In this document: positions 2,739 to 20,551 of the stretch, in pieces
Layout of the letters: each line of letters opens with the position of its first letter
Position numbering within the stretch: the first letter of the stretch is position 1
From: Orbicella franksi
Lineage: Eukaryota
DNA: 64,000 nt
Assembly (NCBI GenBank): GCA_964199315.1
Contig: OZ116712.1
Span: 20,770,001-20,834,000 of the forward strand
Direction: 5' to 3'
Translations under genes and position numbers: made by a program
The notes under the pieces: model-generated
Told to the model about the DNA's origin: nothing
Seen by the model: the letters and a program-made list of their open reading frames with translations, nothing else
The model's database searches: none

Positions 2739-4867
2739 CTGTGAGAAGAGGCATTAATCTGGATGAGTGTGAACGTAAGAAAAAACCACTTATAGATTTG
2801 GTCTCGTATCTCGATTTTTCACGAGATAAACGTTAAACTCTCCGTCTGTTTTCAGGCTATTTAGTAGATCTTGTTCAACGAGAACATTTTTTTTTCAAAT
2901 ATAAATGCACACAAACTCGGACAAAGCAGAAACAAAAAATGCAGCTAGCAATTTTAACGTTGGTGCCGGACCCATACATCGCGTGCGTGCATTTCTCATC
3001 ATTCAACTTATCAAAGTGCAAATTGACTAACAAAGAAGATCACGCTAACCAAATTGCCATACGTTATTCTATTTCTTAATCCTTTGCATTGCAGATGTCA
3101 AATTGCCCAACGTGATCACCAAAGTCTGTGTACTGTCTATCGAGATGCGCATCACAACGAATGGTTTCCTTTTTTTTTTTTTTTTTCCAGTAACACATGT
3201 TTCGTGCGAATCGCGCACATTACTCCAAGAGGTGGTGCATATCTGTCGACGCCGCTAACATTTCATTGACGAGATCACATTGTTACTCAAGAAGGAAATA
3301 ACAATGGCTTGCCAGGGGTTAAGCTTTGATAAATTTGCGGGTAATTAATTGAACGCTTAAACATTGCCAATCGCACTAATTTGACTCTAATCTGGTTTGT
3401 TTTGTCCACCAAGGGACGCCTTTGAAAACAAGTCATGGGGATTTGCGGTCGGATTTGTCAACTTCACACGCGAGAATGGGTCTTAGCTGTGAGTAACATG
3501 CTGCATGGGATGGGGGACGAGGGAAGGTTATTTGTACATAAAAGTTGATAAGTACGTGCGGTAGATTTTGCTGTGGTTTTGGAACGTCCAGTTTGGTGCA
3601 GTCAGAAACGTTTCACATTCCATATTTACCCTATCTTGTACTTTAAATTTATAAAATTAACTCTGGATGTTTTTTTAGATGTGAAACAGGGCAGGGAATT
3701 CTGTATGGCAGCCCTCCCTAAAGGGATATACAGTTCCATCCATGCCAGTCGATTTTCAAATTTTTTCCAAAATAACCAGTGCTATTTTAAAACGTACTGT
3801 AAATGGTTGATAACAGACATTAAGCCACGCCAGAAATAAACCGCCGTAAGAAAACTACCGTTTTAGGACAAGAATTACAACGGTTTTGATGATGAATTAA
3901 TCCAATCGTTTGCAGTCGCTGTCACTCGGTGAGGTGAGTTGGTCGGTCGGATAATAAACAAAATACAAAAGAAATATGGACAAATCTGACTGTATTTACG
4001 TGTAGACTGCCGGCATATTGCGTGGAAGCCACTAGAAGCTTTTTAGGTTTTTGAACTCTTAAAAGTTGTAAAACTCTAGAAGGTGTCCGAAGAAGTCTCT
4101 GTGAGGGCTCACTGATTTAGATGCCAGACTTACTTGATGCAGATGTAAATGATGCGTATTAAACTTGGAAATGCCAGAAAAATAGAAGCATTCAATGAAT
4201 ATAAAAACATTTTTTTTCCCTTCATCCAAAAACTGCGTAGGTGGAACATGGGGATGGCCATAGGTTTGTTCTTCTACAACAAAGTTGTTAAAGACCCTCC
4301 ACAAATAAAAATCTAAGTGGTCACAAGTTTCATTGACCATTGTAAGGGTATGAGTTGTTTAGATAGTTTTTCAAAGAATCCTGATGACGTTCAAGACGAA
4401 AGAAAGCAGGTCTCTGCCATTTCGTAGACTCATCTTTTTTATATCAATTTTTTTTGTCAATGAAAACAGACAGATGACCTGACGGTGAATGGCAAAAACT
4501 CACATAGAGCTGAGCTCGTTGTCTTTGATGTGTCTCCAAACTCTCAAAGCGATCATTGGAAAAAAATAAAATTAAATAAAAAAGCGGTGCATTTGGTTGG
4601 GAGAATTGAAATTTTTAGCTTGGGATTGAAGTGATATAAAAAAATTCATCTCCTGAATCTCTGCTACCTTGCGCTGATTAGAAAAGGTCATTGTTCACAG
4701 ACTCCATGAAGTCCGATTCCCACTTTTTATCTCAGCTGTACTGTTGTCCACCAGTATTACAAGGCCTGGTGAAATCCCTGACTCGCGAAAAATCAAGAGT
4801 TATTACCTGCTATTAATCATAATTACGCTACGTACGTTATTCTAGGTAGATATTTAGTGATATTCAC

Positions 4868-5019
4868 CTGTACTCTGCTTTCAGGCAGGTTTATTTTCAT
4901 GGCCACTTCCTCTCTCATGAAGATGTCAGGATATTTTGTTTTGGCGAAGAGCTCATCCAGTATTTCCAGCTGAGATTTGGTAAAGGTGGTTCGTTCTCGC
5001 CGCTGTTTTCTTGGAGGAC
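4868..5019 (-). CDS. Otx: Otx-1 coding exon 2: homeodomain residues 1-46 (G)[50 protein letters not shown]
   Basis: 152 bp, acceptor ccttcaaAG, donor CAG|GTGAAT. The translation matches the Otx homeodomain signature (RRERTTF...[21 protein letters not shown]). Confidence 0.97.
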
Positions 5020-5616
5020 CTTTGAAGGAGACGTTACAACATTAACTAGATATCATTGAAAATTCTTTTAGAAATTAACTCAATCAGTTGCTATCAGGCG
5101 AGCAGATCTTGTTTCCCATTTTAAGGGACAAATTAGATAGGACATTCTTTAGTCTTCCACCACGCATTGCATTTTTATGCCACGAATCACCAACAAATTA
5201 AAACATAATTTGCCCGAGCTCTTGCTGACCTGGCAAATTTCTTCTTTTGTGTTAAATTCAGTTCTGCTCTCCAAAAAATGAAAAAGAAGGAAAAAGAACT
5301 GTGGTTTCCGCTTTAGCAATTTTTCCGTGCCATGATCTTCATTTCTCTAGGGCGGAAATTCATATCTGTTTAGATCTCTCGTCTGGATAAATCCAAGACA
5401 GCTCAGCGGAAGATGTGAACACTGCTAAAAGTTCAGTATATGCTGGAATGGTATAACTACAGTAACCTTCCTTACTTTAATAAAGTTTTGGATAAAGATG
5501 AGCGAAGACATGCCTTCTCGGCCAACGAGGTTCAAACAATTTAGCCCTCAGGGAGTAATGTGAATGTTTGGTTAAGAAATAAAAATTCAGAATGGGATCT
5601 CAAGTTTGAAAGCTAA

Positions 5617-5697
5617 TTTACCTTCAAAAAACCTTGACATTAAACACTGGGAACACCCTACACAGGGTAGTGAATATCCTGGCCAAAAGAACTCCAT
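5617..5697. promoter_or_regulatory. Paralog-conserved non-coding block in Otx-1 intron 1
   Basis: About 80 bp aligns colinearly with 17189-17266 in Otx-2 intron 1, roughly three-quarters identical by eye. Confidence 0.65.
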
Positions 5698-18522: not shown

Positions 18523-18628
18523 CATACATCGAGGCTTCAGCAGGATCGTAGAAATCCATGCCAGGTGGAGGCCCATAGTTGTACCCATTCATTGCACAAG
18601 GTGGCAGGCGTCCGAAAATACCATTCAT
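18523..18628 (-). CDS. Otx: Otx-2 coding exon 1: MNGIFGRLPPCAMNGYNYGPPPGMDFYDPAEASMY(G)
   Basis: Donor TAT G|GTAAGA. First in-frame ATG after an upstream in-frame TAA. PPCAMNG resembles the Otx N-terminal PPYAxNG motif. Spliced product 231 aa. Confidence 0.9.
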
Positions 18629-18791
18629 TTCTGCTTGCTTGTCTTGTCCGGCAGTGTCTAACAAGTTAGCATGGGATACAGACTGTTAGCGTGAAACATT
18701 TGACCCAGACATCAGATTCGCATGTGACCTGCACGCAGGTTCGATGCTTCAGAACTGTCACCGTGATCAAGTGACAGCTTTGAAAGCTGAC

Positions 18792-18908
18792 ATTCCATTT
18801 CCCGTTCAATTTGGACATTTAAATAACGGCGTTATCTTTCGCTAAGAAGAGATAAATACGCTTAATCGGTCTGCTGAAGAGAGATAATTTCATAGAGATC
18901 ACGCAAAA
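18792..18908 (-). promoter_or_regulatory. Putative proximal promoter of Otx-2, with TATA-like TATTTAAA at 18825-18818 on the minus strand
   Basis: Aligns with 6854-6973. Core GATAATTTCATAGAGATCACGCAAAA lies 255 bp upstream of the ATG. Confidence 0.65.
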
Positions 18909-20551
18909 CTGAACACGGTAAAGTTTCTGCCTTGTCTCTTGCGCGACACCTGATATAGCATGTGACTACCGCTGCACGTGGTAACGCACCTTTGACATAA
19001 CAAAAGGTTCTAAATTCCACGCGGACATGCATAAGAAAACTAACAGCGGAAAGAACTGGCTTCCCTCTGTAAATAAATCACAATTTATTTGTTTGCTTAA
19101 AAAATAAATAAACTTATTTTACGCTTTTTGGTGTTTTCAGTGAAAAACCGTGAAATCGCCAGCTGTTAGATTGCGTTTCTACAGCTGTCTCGAATGGTCA
19201 TAAGCGCCTCCCTAACTCTAGCTCTACGCCGTGGAAACAAGAAAACACAATTTCCTCAATCTTTGATAACACAAACACGAAAAGTATTGCCTCCCATAGA
19301 TCTAGAGTTATGGTAAAACGGTTTTCAACCAATCGTTTGAGACGCAGTGAATTCTTTATGTAATAATTACGAATAAAAAATTATTTTGACAAAGAATTGA
19401 GCTTCACGTTCTTTCTGGAGTCGCCTTTTGGTAAAACGCCAAGCAGTTGTTGTAATCTGCTTGAGAGTCACTTTCAGGGTTTCCGACAGTTGCTGGTCAT
19501 CAGATAATTGAGAGAAAACAATAGATGCCCTCAGGGAAGTTGGGACATAACCCGAGGAAAGAGCCATTGATTGCACAACCAATTTTTGATGTGTCGTAGT
19601 TGCTTCACGTTTGTTAAATCTTGAAACAGACGTTCACTAAATTTAAATCGCGGTCAGTGAAGTGTTAATCTGTTTCACTTGCAACAGACCTTTTATTTAA
19701 CAATCTTATCAATATGAATGTGTTGTTGAAAATTCACCGGCAAATTTAGATGTGGGCGAAGAGCATATTTTTACTCTGACTGGTTATTTATAGCGCATTA
19801 ACACCCCTTCCGGATAATTCTGACCAAATCTAGATTTATCGCGCAATGCCGACACTGAGATGACAATGACCACGTAGATGTTTTTTAAAATGCTTAGGAA
19901 ATCGTAAAAGTACACGTTTTACTTGACAATTCTTGTCACTTTTCCTCACCTTTGTCCTAATTAATGTTTTGTAAAGGAATGCCCGGAAGGCGGTGACACT
20001 TTGATATTTTCATGATAACTGGGGCACTCTTCATTGCAAAGTATTGTTTAATGAAATGATCTGGCTACGATAAACTGGGTCAACATCATATGTGTGAACT
20101 TTACATTCTGAATACATCATGATCAAAAGTATATAAAAGCGGAAAGAGTTGTGAACAAACTAGTTTCTGATCTGTCAACAAATTTCACGAAATTGCTAAC
20201 GTCAATTTATCTATTGGAAAGTGCTTCAGTAAGGCGGGGTGAACACTCCCTTAAGCTGAGCGTCAAAACAAATAGTAACAGAAATAAAACAACGAAATTC
20301 TCGAGTCTTCAAGGTTGGAGAGGTGCCAGTGTAGACACATACACGAACTAACTTGACGTCTACTTGTACGTCATAAAATATCCTGTTCTACATTGCACAT
20401 CACGTACAGCGGTATGCGGAATGACGGTGCATTCCGCATTGCAAATATTCCTCCTTAATGTTTTTTTTTACATATTGAAAAAAAAAATCGTTACCAAAAT
20501 AGTTTTGACATGGTCAGCAACTCAGAGATTATGAGAATTTGACTGAGGGTC

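Follow-up and report, generated by a model that had tools for sequence, protein, structure and literature searches.

Blocks shared by the coral genes Otx-1 and Otx-2: an alternative coding exon, three conserved non-coding elements and chance matches

We sought to determine what two neighboring Otx genes of the coral Orbicella franksi, Otx-1 and Otx-2, have in common outside their main exons. Both lie in a 64,000-nt stretch of DNA (assembly GCA_964199315.1, contig OZ116712.1, positions 20,770,001 to 20,834,000 of the forward strand), hereafter the window, in whose coordinates all positions are given. An initial annotation had proposed that at least six short non-coding blocks, colinear and identically oriented in the two genes, form a candidate duplicated cis-regulatory module. 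All of the matches that it quoted do exist, and four blocks outside the main exons are really common to Otx-1 and Otx-2: one is an alternative coding exon, which we call exon 1b, and three are conserved non-coding elements (CNEs); the rest are due to chance. We put the probability that the chain is such a mixture and goes back to an ancient tandem duplication at about 0.75.

Sensitive blastn comparison of the two loci yielded, beyond the exons, an 81-bp match of 76.5% identity (5617-5697 / 17189-17266, E = 3e-11), a gapped one spanning the exon-1 region (6595-6973 / 18518-18908) and, in intron 2, a weak one (3200-3348 / 15540-15681, E = 0.03). Most of the intronic and intergenic sequence could not be aligned between the paralogs, by blastn or by segment tests, and the C-termini do not align either, protein identity being 44%; on both points the initial annotation was right. 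Colinearity was assessed by chaining gapless high-scoring segment pairs (HSPs), with block-wise dinucleotide shuffles and 44 comparisons of unrelated real segments serving as the null. With the three main exons masked, the chain score was 128, which none of 200 shuffles reached (69±17) and which also exceeds the unrelated real segments (81±17, maximum 117). However, once exon 1b was masked too, the score dropped to 99, a value reached by 15 of 300 shuffles and lying within the range of unrelated real DNA, so the excess of the colinear chain is carried by this one block.

Gapped alignment of individual segments gave a clearly real score for the proximal upstream segment (6868-6973 / 18811-18908; 31 vs 12.4±1.7 in shuffles), and scores that are marginal by themselves for intron 1a, between exon 1 and exon 1b (19 vs 13.5±1.3, reached by 2 of 100 shuffles), and for intron 2 (20 vs 15.3±1.8, reached by 4 of 100). 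No signal came from the distal upstream segment, whose score 29 of 100 shuffles reached, or from the segment between exon 1b and exon 2. We accept the intron 1a and intron 2 segments as real because their marginal scores are rescued by the cross-species profiles described below; as the sole explanation, chance suffices for three blocks and fails for four. For these comparisons, orthologous loci were taken from coral holobiont assemblies (L001-L005, L007 and L014), and the conservation tests were confined to Scleractinia. Synteny is retained in the species of L001-L003 and L007, in which the Otx-1 ortholog follows the Otx-2 ortholog, and within the fetched flanks of L004 the Otx-2 ortholog alone was seen.

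The strongest of the blocks, 5617-5697 / 17189-17266, contains exon 1b in either gene:

5622 to 5697, minus strand: Otx-1 exon 1b, MEFFWPGYSLPCVGCSQCLMSRFFE-G, with ATG at 5697 and donor GT at 5621-5620; 76 nt, phase 1

17194 to 17266, minus strand: Otx-2 exon 1b, MEFAWPGYLPCLGCPQCLTSRFLE-G, with donor GT at 17193-17192; 73 nt, phase 1

This block, listed as non-coding sequence from the middle of intron 1, is an alternative first coding exon and not an enhancer. In an alignment of both paralogs and three other species (A1), conservation begins at an invariant ATGGA and stops at an invariant GGAAG/GTA donor (donor sequence GTAAA), and the sole indel, of 3 nt, keeps the frame. The phase is the same as that of canonical exon 1 into exon 2 (G/GT CCT CCA = G-P-P), and the peptide reads MEFxWPGY(x)xPCxGCPQCLxSRFxE, followed by the G of the homeodomain exon. 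Differences are in excess at third codon positions: by position they number 5, 2 and 10 between Otx-1 and Otx-2, 3, 1 and 10 between the Otx-2 copy and L001 (14 changed codons, 11 synonymous and 3 non-synonymous), and 6, 3 and 14 between the Otx-2 copy and L004.

Translated, 5697-5622 gives a peptide identical to the N-terminus of the RefSeq Orbicella isoform X3 (P0019), and the same N-terminus occurs in RefSeq proteins from Oculina patagonica (homeobox protein otx5-B-like isoform X3), Acropora millepora and A. muricata (OTX1 B-like isoform X2) and Pocillopora verrucosa (OTX isoform X2), as well as in several transcript-derived proteins. Exon 1b is already annotated in RefSeq Gnomon models, an automatic annotation only, and no published description of it was found in literature searches. 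In poly(A) RNA, 12 reads extend from exon 2 into 5625-5654 of Otx-1 exon 1b and nine into 6601-6630 of canonical exon 1, so both Otx-1 isoforms are expressed; these are paralog reads that partly fit Otx-2 exon 2. The spliced transcript contigs L009, from a related species, and L008 carry exon 1b as well. Exon 1b may have a transcription start of its own: no conserved acceptor precedes its ATG (A1, A6), and the Acropora exon-1b transcript has a 5′ untranslated region (5′UTR) of 201 nt. An apparent “intronic enhancer” can thus prove to be a short coding exon.

A third, diverged copy of exon 1b (MAFNWTVYSPYWSCLQCLAPSPFMEG, window -4790 to -4867) is located in intron 1 of Otx-0, which together with Otx-3 and Otx-4 completes the local Otx cluster, and in the tree the Acropora and Pocillopora isoforms bearing the exon-1b N-terminus group with Otx-0. 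Otx-3 and Otx-4 yielded no copy when 100 kb were searched with tblastn, a motif scan and nhmmer. When 1.84 billion protein representatives were searched with a profile of the exon-1b N-terminus, only coral-type sequences came up, which is not proof of its absence elsewhere. Next to the Otx-2 copy lies another conserved interval:

17267 to 17450, minus strand: block upstream of Otx-2 exon 1b, with HSPs to all three other species and a TATA-like motif (A6)

It is a candidate promoter or 5′UTR of exon 1b; its sharing with Otx-1 is not significant, and its conservation is among orthologs only.

The other three real blocks are CNEs, each with a copy in Otx-1 and in Otx-2:

3182 to 3466, minus strand: Otx-1 intron-2 CNE, with core TTAATTACCCGCAAATT at 3332-3348 and GCACGAAA at 3200-3207 (A4)

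15536 to 15771, minus strand: Otx-2 intron-2 CNE, with TTAATTACCCACAAATT at 15665-15681 and GCACGAAA at 15540-15547 (A4)

6402 to 6575, minus strand: Otx-1 intron-1 donor-proximal CNE, with CTTGCATGT at 6550-6558, GATAATCTTTCC at 6490-6501 and GCTAAGTGG at 6464-6472 (A5)

18387 to 18522, minus strand: Otx-2 intron-1 donor-proximal CNE, with TTGCGTG, GATAATCTTTCC at 18452-18463 and GCTAAGTGG at 18437-18445 (A5)

6694 to 7023, minus strand: Otx-1 exon-1-upstream CNE, with TTGCGTGAT at 6963-6971, TATA-like TTTTAAG, AAATGGAAT and GGTCAAA at 6758-6764 (A2)

18658 to 18929, minus strand: Otx-2 exon-1-upstream CNE, with TTGCGTGAT at 18898-18906, TATTTAAA, AAATGGAAT and GGTCAAA at 18699-18705 (A2)

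The nhmmer profiles of these elements were made solely from the Otx-2 loci of other species, with no window sequence, which avoids circularity, and were run over the whole window and then over 100 kb including the flanks. The intron-2 profile matched Otx-2 at 15536-15771 (E = 5e-52) and Otx-1 at 3322-3466 (E = 3e-6), the donor-proximal profile matched 18387-18525 (E = 6e-21) and 6439-6561 (E = 2e-6), and the exon-1-upstream profile matched 18612-18929 (E = 1e-35) and 6691-7009 (E = 1e-5). Every CNE profile thus gave exactly two significant matches, the Otx-2 element and the colinear Otx-1 site, in the same order and on the same strand, with no third match under E 0.5 in the window or under 0.1 across the 100 kb. 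Profiles of Otx-1 orthologs recovered 3182-3451 (E = 5e-11), 6402-6575 (E = 7e-17) and the upstream CNE (E = 8e-55). As the initial annotation had reported for Otx-3, no copies of the CNEs were found at Otx-3, nor at Otx-4, by tblastn, motif scan or nhmmer over the 100 kb, and Otx-0 has no detectable CNE despite its diverged exon 1b.

Identity of the CNEs to their orthologs is 72-84% (80-82% for the Otx-2 intron-2 CNE), and between the paralogs it is about 60-77%. The intron-2 17-mer is present in every ortholog, and motifs invariant across all 5-6 aligned sequences of this CNE are TTAATTAYCCRCAAATT, TTTAAC and GCACGAAA (A4). Invariant in the donor-proximal CNE, which begins about 40 nt past the exon-1 donor in every copy and spans 40-160 nt downstream of it, are TTGCRTG, GATWATCTTT and GCTAAGTGGNTTT (A5); in the upstream CNE they are TTGCGTGAT, a TATA-like T(T/A)T(T/A)AA(G/A), AAATGGAAT, GGTCAAA and an acceptor-like TAG (A2). 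Because mismatches show no preference among the three codon positions, indels are of 1-2 nt and open frames are lacking, the three CNEs are non-coding. RNA reads hardly cover the Otx-2 copies (depth about 0, and 0-0.45 for the donor-proximal one), as compared with 50-90x over exons.

Per species, about 31-44% of the Otx-2 non-coding sequence is alignable (1139-1637 of 3700 nt), and the islands kept in all three other species are 15298-15797, 17267-17450, 18419-18522 and 18658-18905. Three of these are the shared CNEs, the first being a wider version of the Otx-2 intron-2 element, and the fourth is the block upstream of exon 1b. The initial annotation regarded its blocks as islands retained by purifying selection. 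This holds for the three CNEs: Otx-1 and Otx-2 both retain them, with order and orientation unchanged, and conservation extends to three or four further coral species. The best block, however, is coding, and three of the matches are due to chance; what is under purifying selection is one short exon and three non-coding intervals.

The three chance matches are the following:

5820 to 5829, partner 17457-17466: 10-mer GACGGATTAT

6452, partner 18313: 10-mer TAATCCCAAA

8014 to 8027, partner 20146-20159: upstream 14-mer

These pairings are coincidences. The two copies of GACGGATTAT fall in non-homologous alignment columns, that of Otx-2 within an insertion (A6). The Otx-1 copy of TAATCCCAAA is inside the true donor-proximal CNE, the real Otx-2 homolog of which is located about 100 nt from 18313. 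Cross-coral alignment, which bore out exon 1b and the three CNEs, revealed no counterpart of either 10-mer or of the 14-mer in orthologous position in any fetched locus, and the sole match to the 14-mer within 2 mismatches in these loci, at L007 19463, is on the opposite strand. As for the homeodomain sites that three of the blocks had been said to contain, K50 and TAATTA sites, numbering two each in 1.4 kb of CNE vs 0.55 and 0.91 per kb in the window, are not clearly enriched, and only the intron-2 TAATTA is retained in both paralogs. TGCGTG occurs four times in the 1.4 kb of CNE vs 0.5 per kb in the window.

The block upstream of exon 1 had been interpreted as a promoter. In Otx-2, the model of which was fixed by RNA junctions from two adult poly(A) RNA-seq runs (X23 and X24), RNA depth is about 0 over 18796-18952 and past 18661, and reads with loose ends at 18661 carry on into sequence equal to 28189-28218 (loose-end consensus), which is adjoined by a GTAAGT donor (GT at 28184-28183) and belongs to a distal exon:

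28185 to 28499, minus strand: Otx-2 distal leader exon, ending at 28185, and conserved promoter region 28327-28499

Because of this continuation and this donor, we conclude that adult Otx-2 RNA in the samples examined arises from a distal promoter, with a 9.5-kb 5′UTR intron following the leader. The upstream block sits in this intron, 150-250 nt upstream of the exon-1 acceptor, and, since exon 1 is entered by splicing from the leader at 28185, it is not the Otx-2 promoter used in the adult RNA examined. In the Otx-1 lineage, the contig L009 begins at about 6763-6785, inside the upstream CNE, and a conserved TATA-like box lies within the CNE, some 190 nt ahead of the ATG; the element is most likely a proximal alternative promoter or a promoter-proximal module.

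As to the age of the shared elements, in a tree of the post-homeodomain region Otx-0 groups with Acropora and Pocillopora genes (support 100/98), and the Otx-2 clade takes in Acropora OtxB (100/99) and leaves out Otx-1. Because of this composition of the Otx-2 clade, the Otx-1/Otx-2 split must be older than the divergence of complex and robust corals (Acropora-Orbicella), which took place hundreds of millions of years ago. The ancestral Otx unit that was duplicated would have begun about 320 bp ahead of exon 1 and ended with exon 3, and the three CNEs would be cis-regulatory DNA inherited from the ancestral gene. The two intronic CNEs would most likely act as enhancers, or else control the choice between exon 1 and exon 1b.

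Several observations weigh against this account of a mixture left by tandem duplication. Two of the three CNEs are marginal in direct paralog alignment, and their E-values between paralogs are modest (1e-5 to 2e-6); the regulatory function of all three is one that we infer from sequence. Otx-2 exon 1b shows a depth of about 0, with no joint, in X23 and X24, both of the informative runs, and no Otx-2-type protein using it was recovered either among the 18 proteins from a search with Otx-2 exon 3 or by a search with the exon-1b N-terminus; nevertheless, the fact that it evolves like coding sequence and is present in L001, L004 and L005 argues that it is used somewhere. Finally, L009 reads without a splice from about 6763 across exon 1 and intron 1a to exon 1b; it could represent a pre-mRNA or a long first exon.

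If the shared blocks were the product of recent duplication or gene conversion and not of selection, the 88% identity of exon 2 between the paralogs, about the same as between orthologs, would be readily understood. However, introns and C-termini are unalignable, both lineages are separate in other corals, and the ortholog match of each CNE (E 1e-21 to 1e-52) is far stronger than that of its paralog (about 1e-5 to 1e-6); since orthologs are far closer than paralogs, we exclude such an origin for the CNEs and give it hardly any probability overall. Only slightly better are the prospects of the original proposal in full, with all six blocks as non-coding enhancer fragments of one duplicated module rich in homeodomain sites. 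In its favor, the blocks really are colinear, no shuffle matches the chain as long as masking is confined to the three main exons, and three blocks are genuine CNEs. Yet the strongest block codes for protein and three matches are unconserved and no better than chance, which already refutes four of the seven sub-blocks, and the K50/TAATTA sites offer no clear enrichment; the proposal is very improbable as it stands.

One supposedly non-coding block having proved to be an exon, and the upstream CNE being included in the transcript contig L009, the CNEs might themselves be unannotated exons or a small non-coding RNA and not regulators at the DNA level. The near-zero RNA depth over the Otx-2 copies next to exons at 50-90x, the lack of open frames and codon periodicity, and the 1-2-nt indels render this improbable. 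The intronic CNEs might instead act on RNA by controlling the splicing of exon 1 vs exon 1b, e.g. through pairing of CTTGCRTGT with the exon-1 5′ splice site. The constant distance of the intron-1 CNE from the donor in every copy would agree with such a role, and RNAalifold does pair the two sequences, with one compensatory change, but the predicted helix is weak (-3.7 kcal/mol, with many G-U pairs and a bulge), the same TTGCGTG motif is found in the upstream CNE away from any donor, and the intron-2 CNE is distant from both splice sites. RNA structure in the intron-1 CNE was rejected as a candidate because only this weak helix is predicted, and we consider RNA-level action of the intronic CNEs unlikely, if less so than the preceding alternatives.

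Returning to the mixture of exon 1b, three CNEs and chance matches, one can extend it to a wider proposal, which we offer tentatively and consider doubtful. An ancestral anthozoan Otx regulatory unit, comprising a TATA-type promoter module, the donor-proximal and intron-2 elements and a Cys-rich N-terminal exon, may be older than the complex/robust split and persist in two or more tandem paralogs, as a cnidarian counterpart of the paralogous CNEs (dCNEs) of vertebrates, and the shared TTGCGTG flanking exon 1 may mark a common upstream regulator switching the N-terminal isoforms.

To our knowledge, CNEs are well charted in vertebrates and barely in cnidarians, and literature searches found no published description of the coral Otx CNEs. 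Ancient duplicated CNEs are a known kind of element, newly seen here in a cnidarian: dCNEs around vertebrate developmental genes form a well-known class (PMC1896008, PMC2781166, PMC3595034). The coral elements resemble them in being short islands that both duplicates of a developmental transcription-factor gene retain, colinear and conserved in orthologs amid unalignable sequence. They differ in stemming from a local tandem duplication in a cnidarian and not from vertebrate whole-genome duplication, in being located within or next to the transcription unit, in the lower identity between paralogs (about 60-77%) and in that the enhancers are putative. In the sea urchin, alternative 5′ exons and promoters of Otx yield the alpha and beta forms with different N-termini and the same homeodomain and C-terminus; the coral arrangement is similar in that one Otx gene obtains alternative N-termini from alternative 5′ exons, but the coral exon-1b peptide (WPGY...PCxGCPQCL) had no counterpart outside coral sequences among the 1.84 billion proteins searched, and the two systems need not be homologous. 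The Nematostella vectensis cluster is described as consisting of otxA, otxB and otxC (Mazza et al. 2007, via PMC10719294); as far as that description goes, it shares with the coral cluster the tandem arrangement of anthozoan Otx genes and a conserved intron in the homeobox, and differs from it in that the coral cluster has five genes. Precisely delimited elements of 100-300 bp each, common to two old Otx paralogs, are concrete targets, and they bear on the regulation in corals of a head/oral patterning gene and on regulatory partitioning after tandem duplication. The result is a useful, ordinary extension, which overturns no current ideas.

Three of the five clustered Otx genes, Otx-1, Otx-2 and Otx-3, are carried by the window, each on the minus strand; Otx-0 and Otx-4 were located just beyond its ends by a whole-genome protein search and fetched flanks. 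The exons of Otx-1 listed here were read from the sequence, and the neighboring genes and main exons are as follows:

G000:C15:20761156-20766200 (window about -8844 to -3824), minus strand: Otx-0, left flank

2325 to 2738, minus strand: Otx-1 exon 3, with the homeodomain end WFKNKRAK, the C-terminus and the stop

4868 to 5019, minus strand: Otx-1 exon 2, 152 nt, N-terminal part of the homeodomain

6600 to 6693, minus strand: Otx-1 canonical exon 1, coding part, MDTRLPSCAMSSFNFEAPNTEFFYPDLVPMY-G

14432 to 14869, minus strand: Otx-2 exon 3, with an RNA joint from 14869 to 16279

16279 to 16430, minus strand: Otx-2 exon 2, with RNA joints at both ends

18523 to 18657, minus strand: Otx-2 exon 1, with coding sequence 18523-18628 (MNGIFGRLPPCAMNGYNY...), ATG at 18628, acceptor AG at 18659-18658 and an RNA joint from 16430 to 18523

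G000:C15:20842424 onward (window 72457-78199), plus strand: Otx-4, right flank

Exon 3 of Otx-1 shares 99% identity with the RefSeq entry homeobox protein otx5-B-like isoform X3 of Orbicella faveolata (P0019), and upstream of exon 1 an acceptor-like TAG ending at 6723 is invariant in alignment A2. For Otx-2 exon 3, the identities are 79% with a protein of Oculina patagonica and 57% with Orthodenticle B of Acropora millepora. The local gene models are corrected to include five Otx genes, the Otx-2 distal leader exon and an alternative N-terminus in three paralogs. Both Otx-0, at its exon 1, and Otx-4, at its exon 3, are matched by loose ends of RNA reads and are therefore expressed.

A paralogous leader exon for Otx-1 was sought and rejected, the Otx-2 leader and promoter being unmatched in 6.7-14.4 kb, and this intergenic region contains no block conserved with L001. 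The conserved promoter region of Otx-2, 28327-28499, is 68% identical to L014 2439-2611 and is likewise without a paralog match. Agreement of the loose ends at the Otx-2 leader is just 0.63-0.72, a hint of more than one leader. Otx-2 also has large upstream CNEs that Otx-1 lacks. A 490-bp element at 26331-26819 in its 5′UTR intron, not common to Otx-1, displays the strongest non-coding conservation of the locus (71% identity to another coral, L014 4658-5150, E = 1e-68), lacks codon periodicity and has stops in every frame; two smaller conserved blocks, 26876-26991 and 24132-24251, are found nearby.

In intron 2 of Otx-2, a rare RNA joint, 14867-15089, skips 221 nt (4 reads, run X23), and there is low depth over 15028-15498, which points to a minor alternative acceptor or exon. 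The Otx-2-type transcript P0007 from another coral has a third type of N-terminus, MYYKGGIVNQ-G, ahead of the homeodomain exon, suggesting a further alternative 5′ exon in some species. Within intron 1 of Otx-2, 17640-17764 is an interspersed repeat of ~125 bp with at least 536 candidate genomic copies of 85-93% identity; RNA reads over it carry fixed mismatches and loose ends, and therefore derive from other copies of the repeat. Two short, internally repetitive stretches, 31621-31731 and 34665-34787, resemble L014 19616-19765 of another coral in both orientations, and probably belong with it to a shared repeat family.

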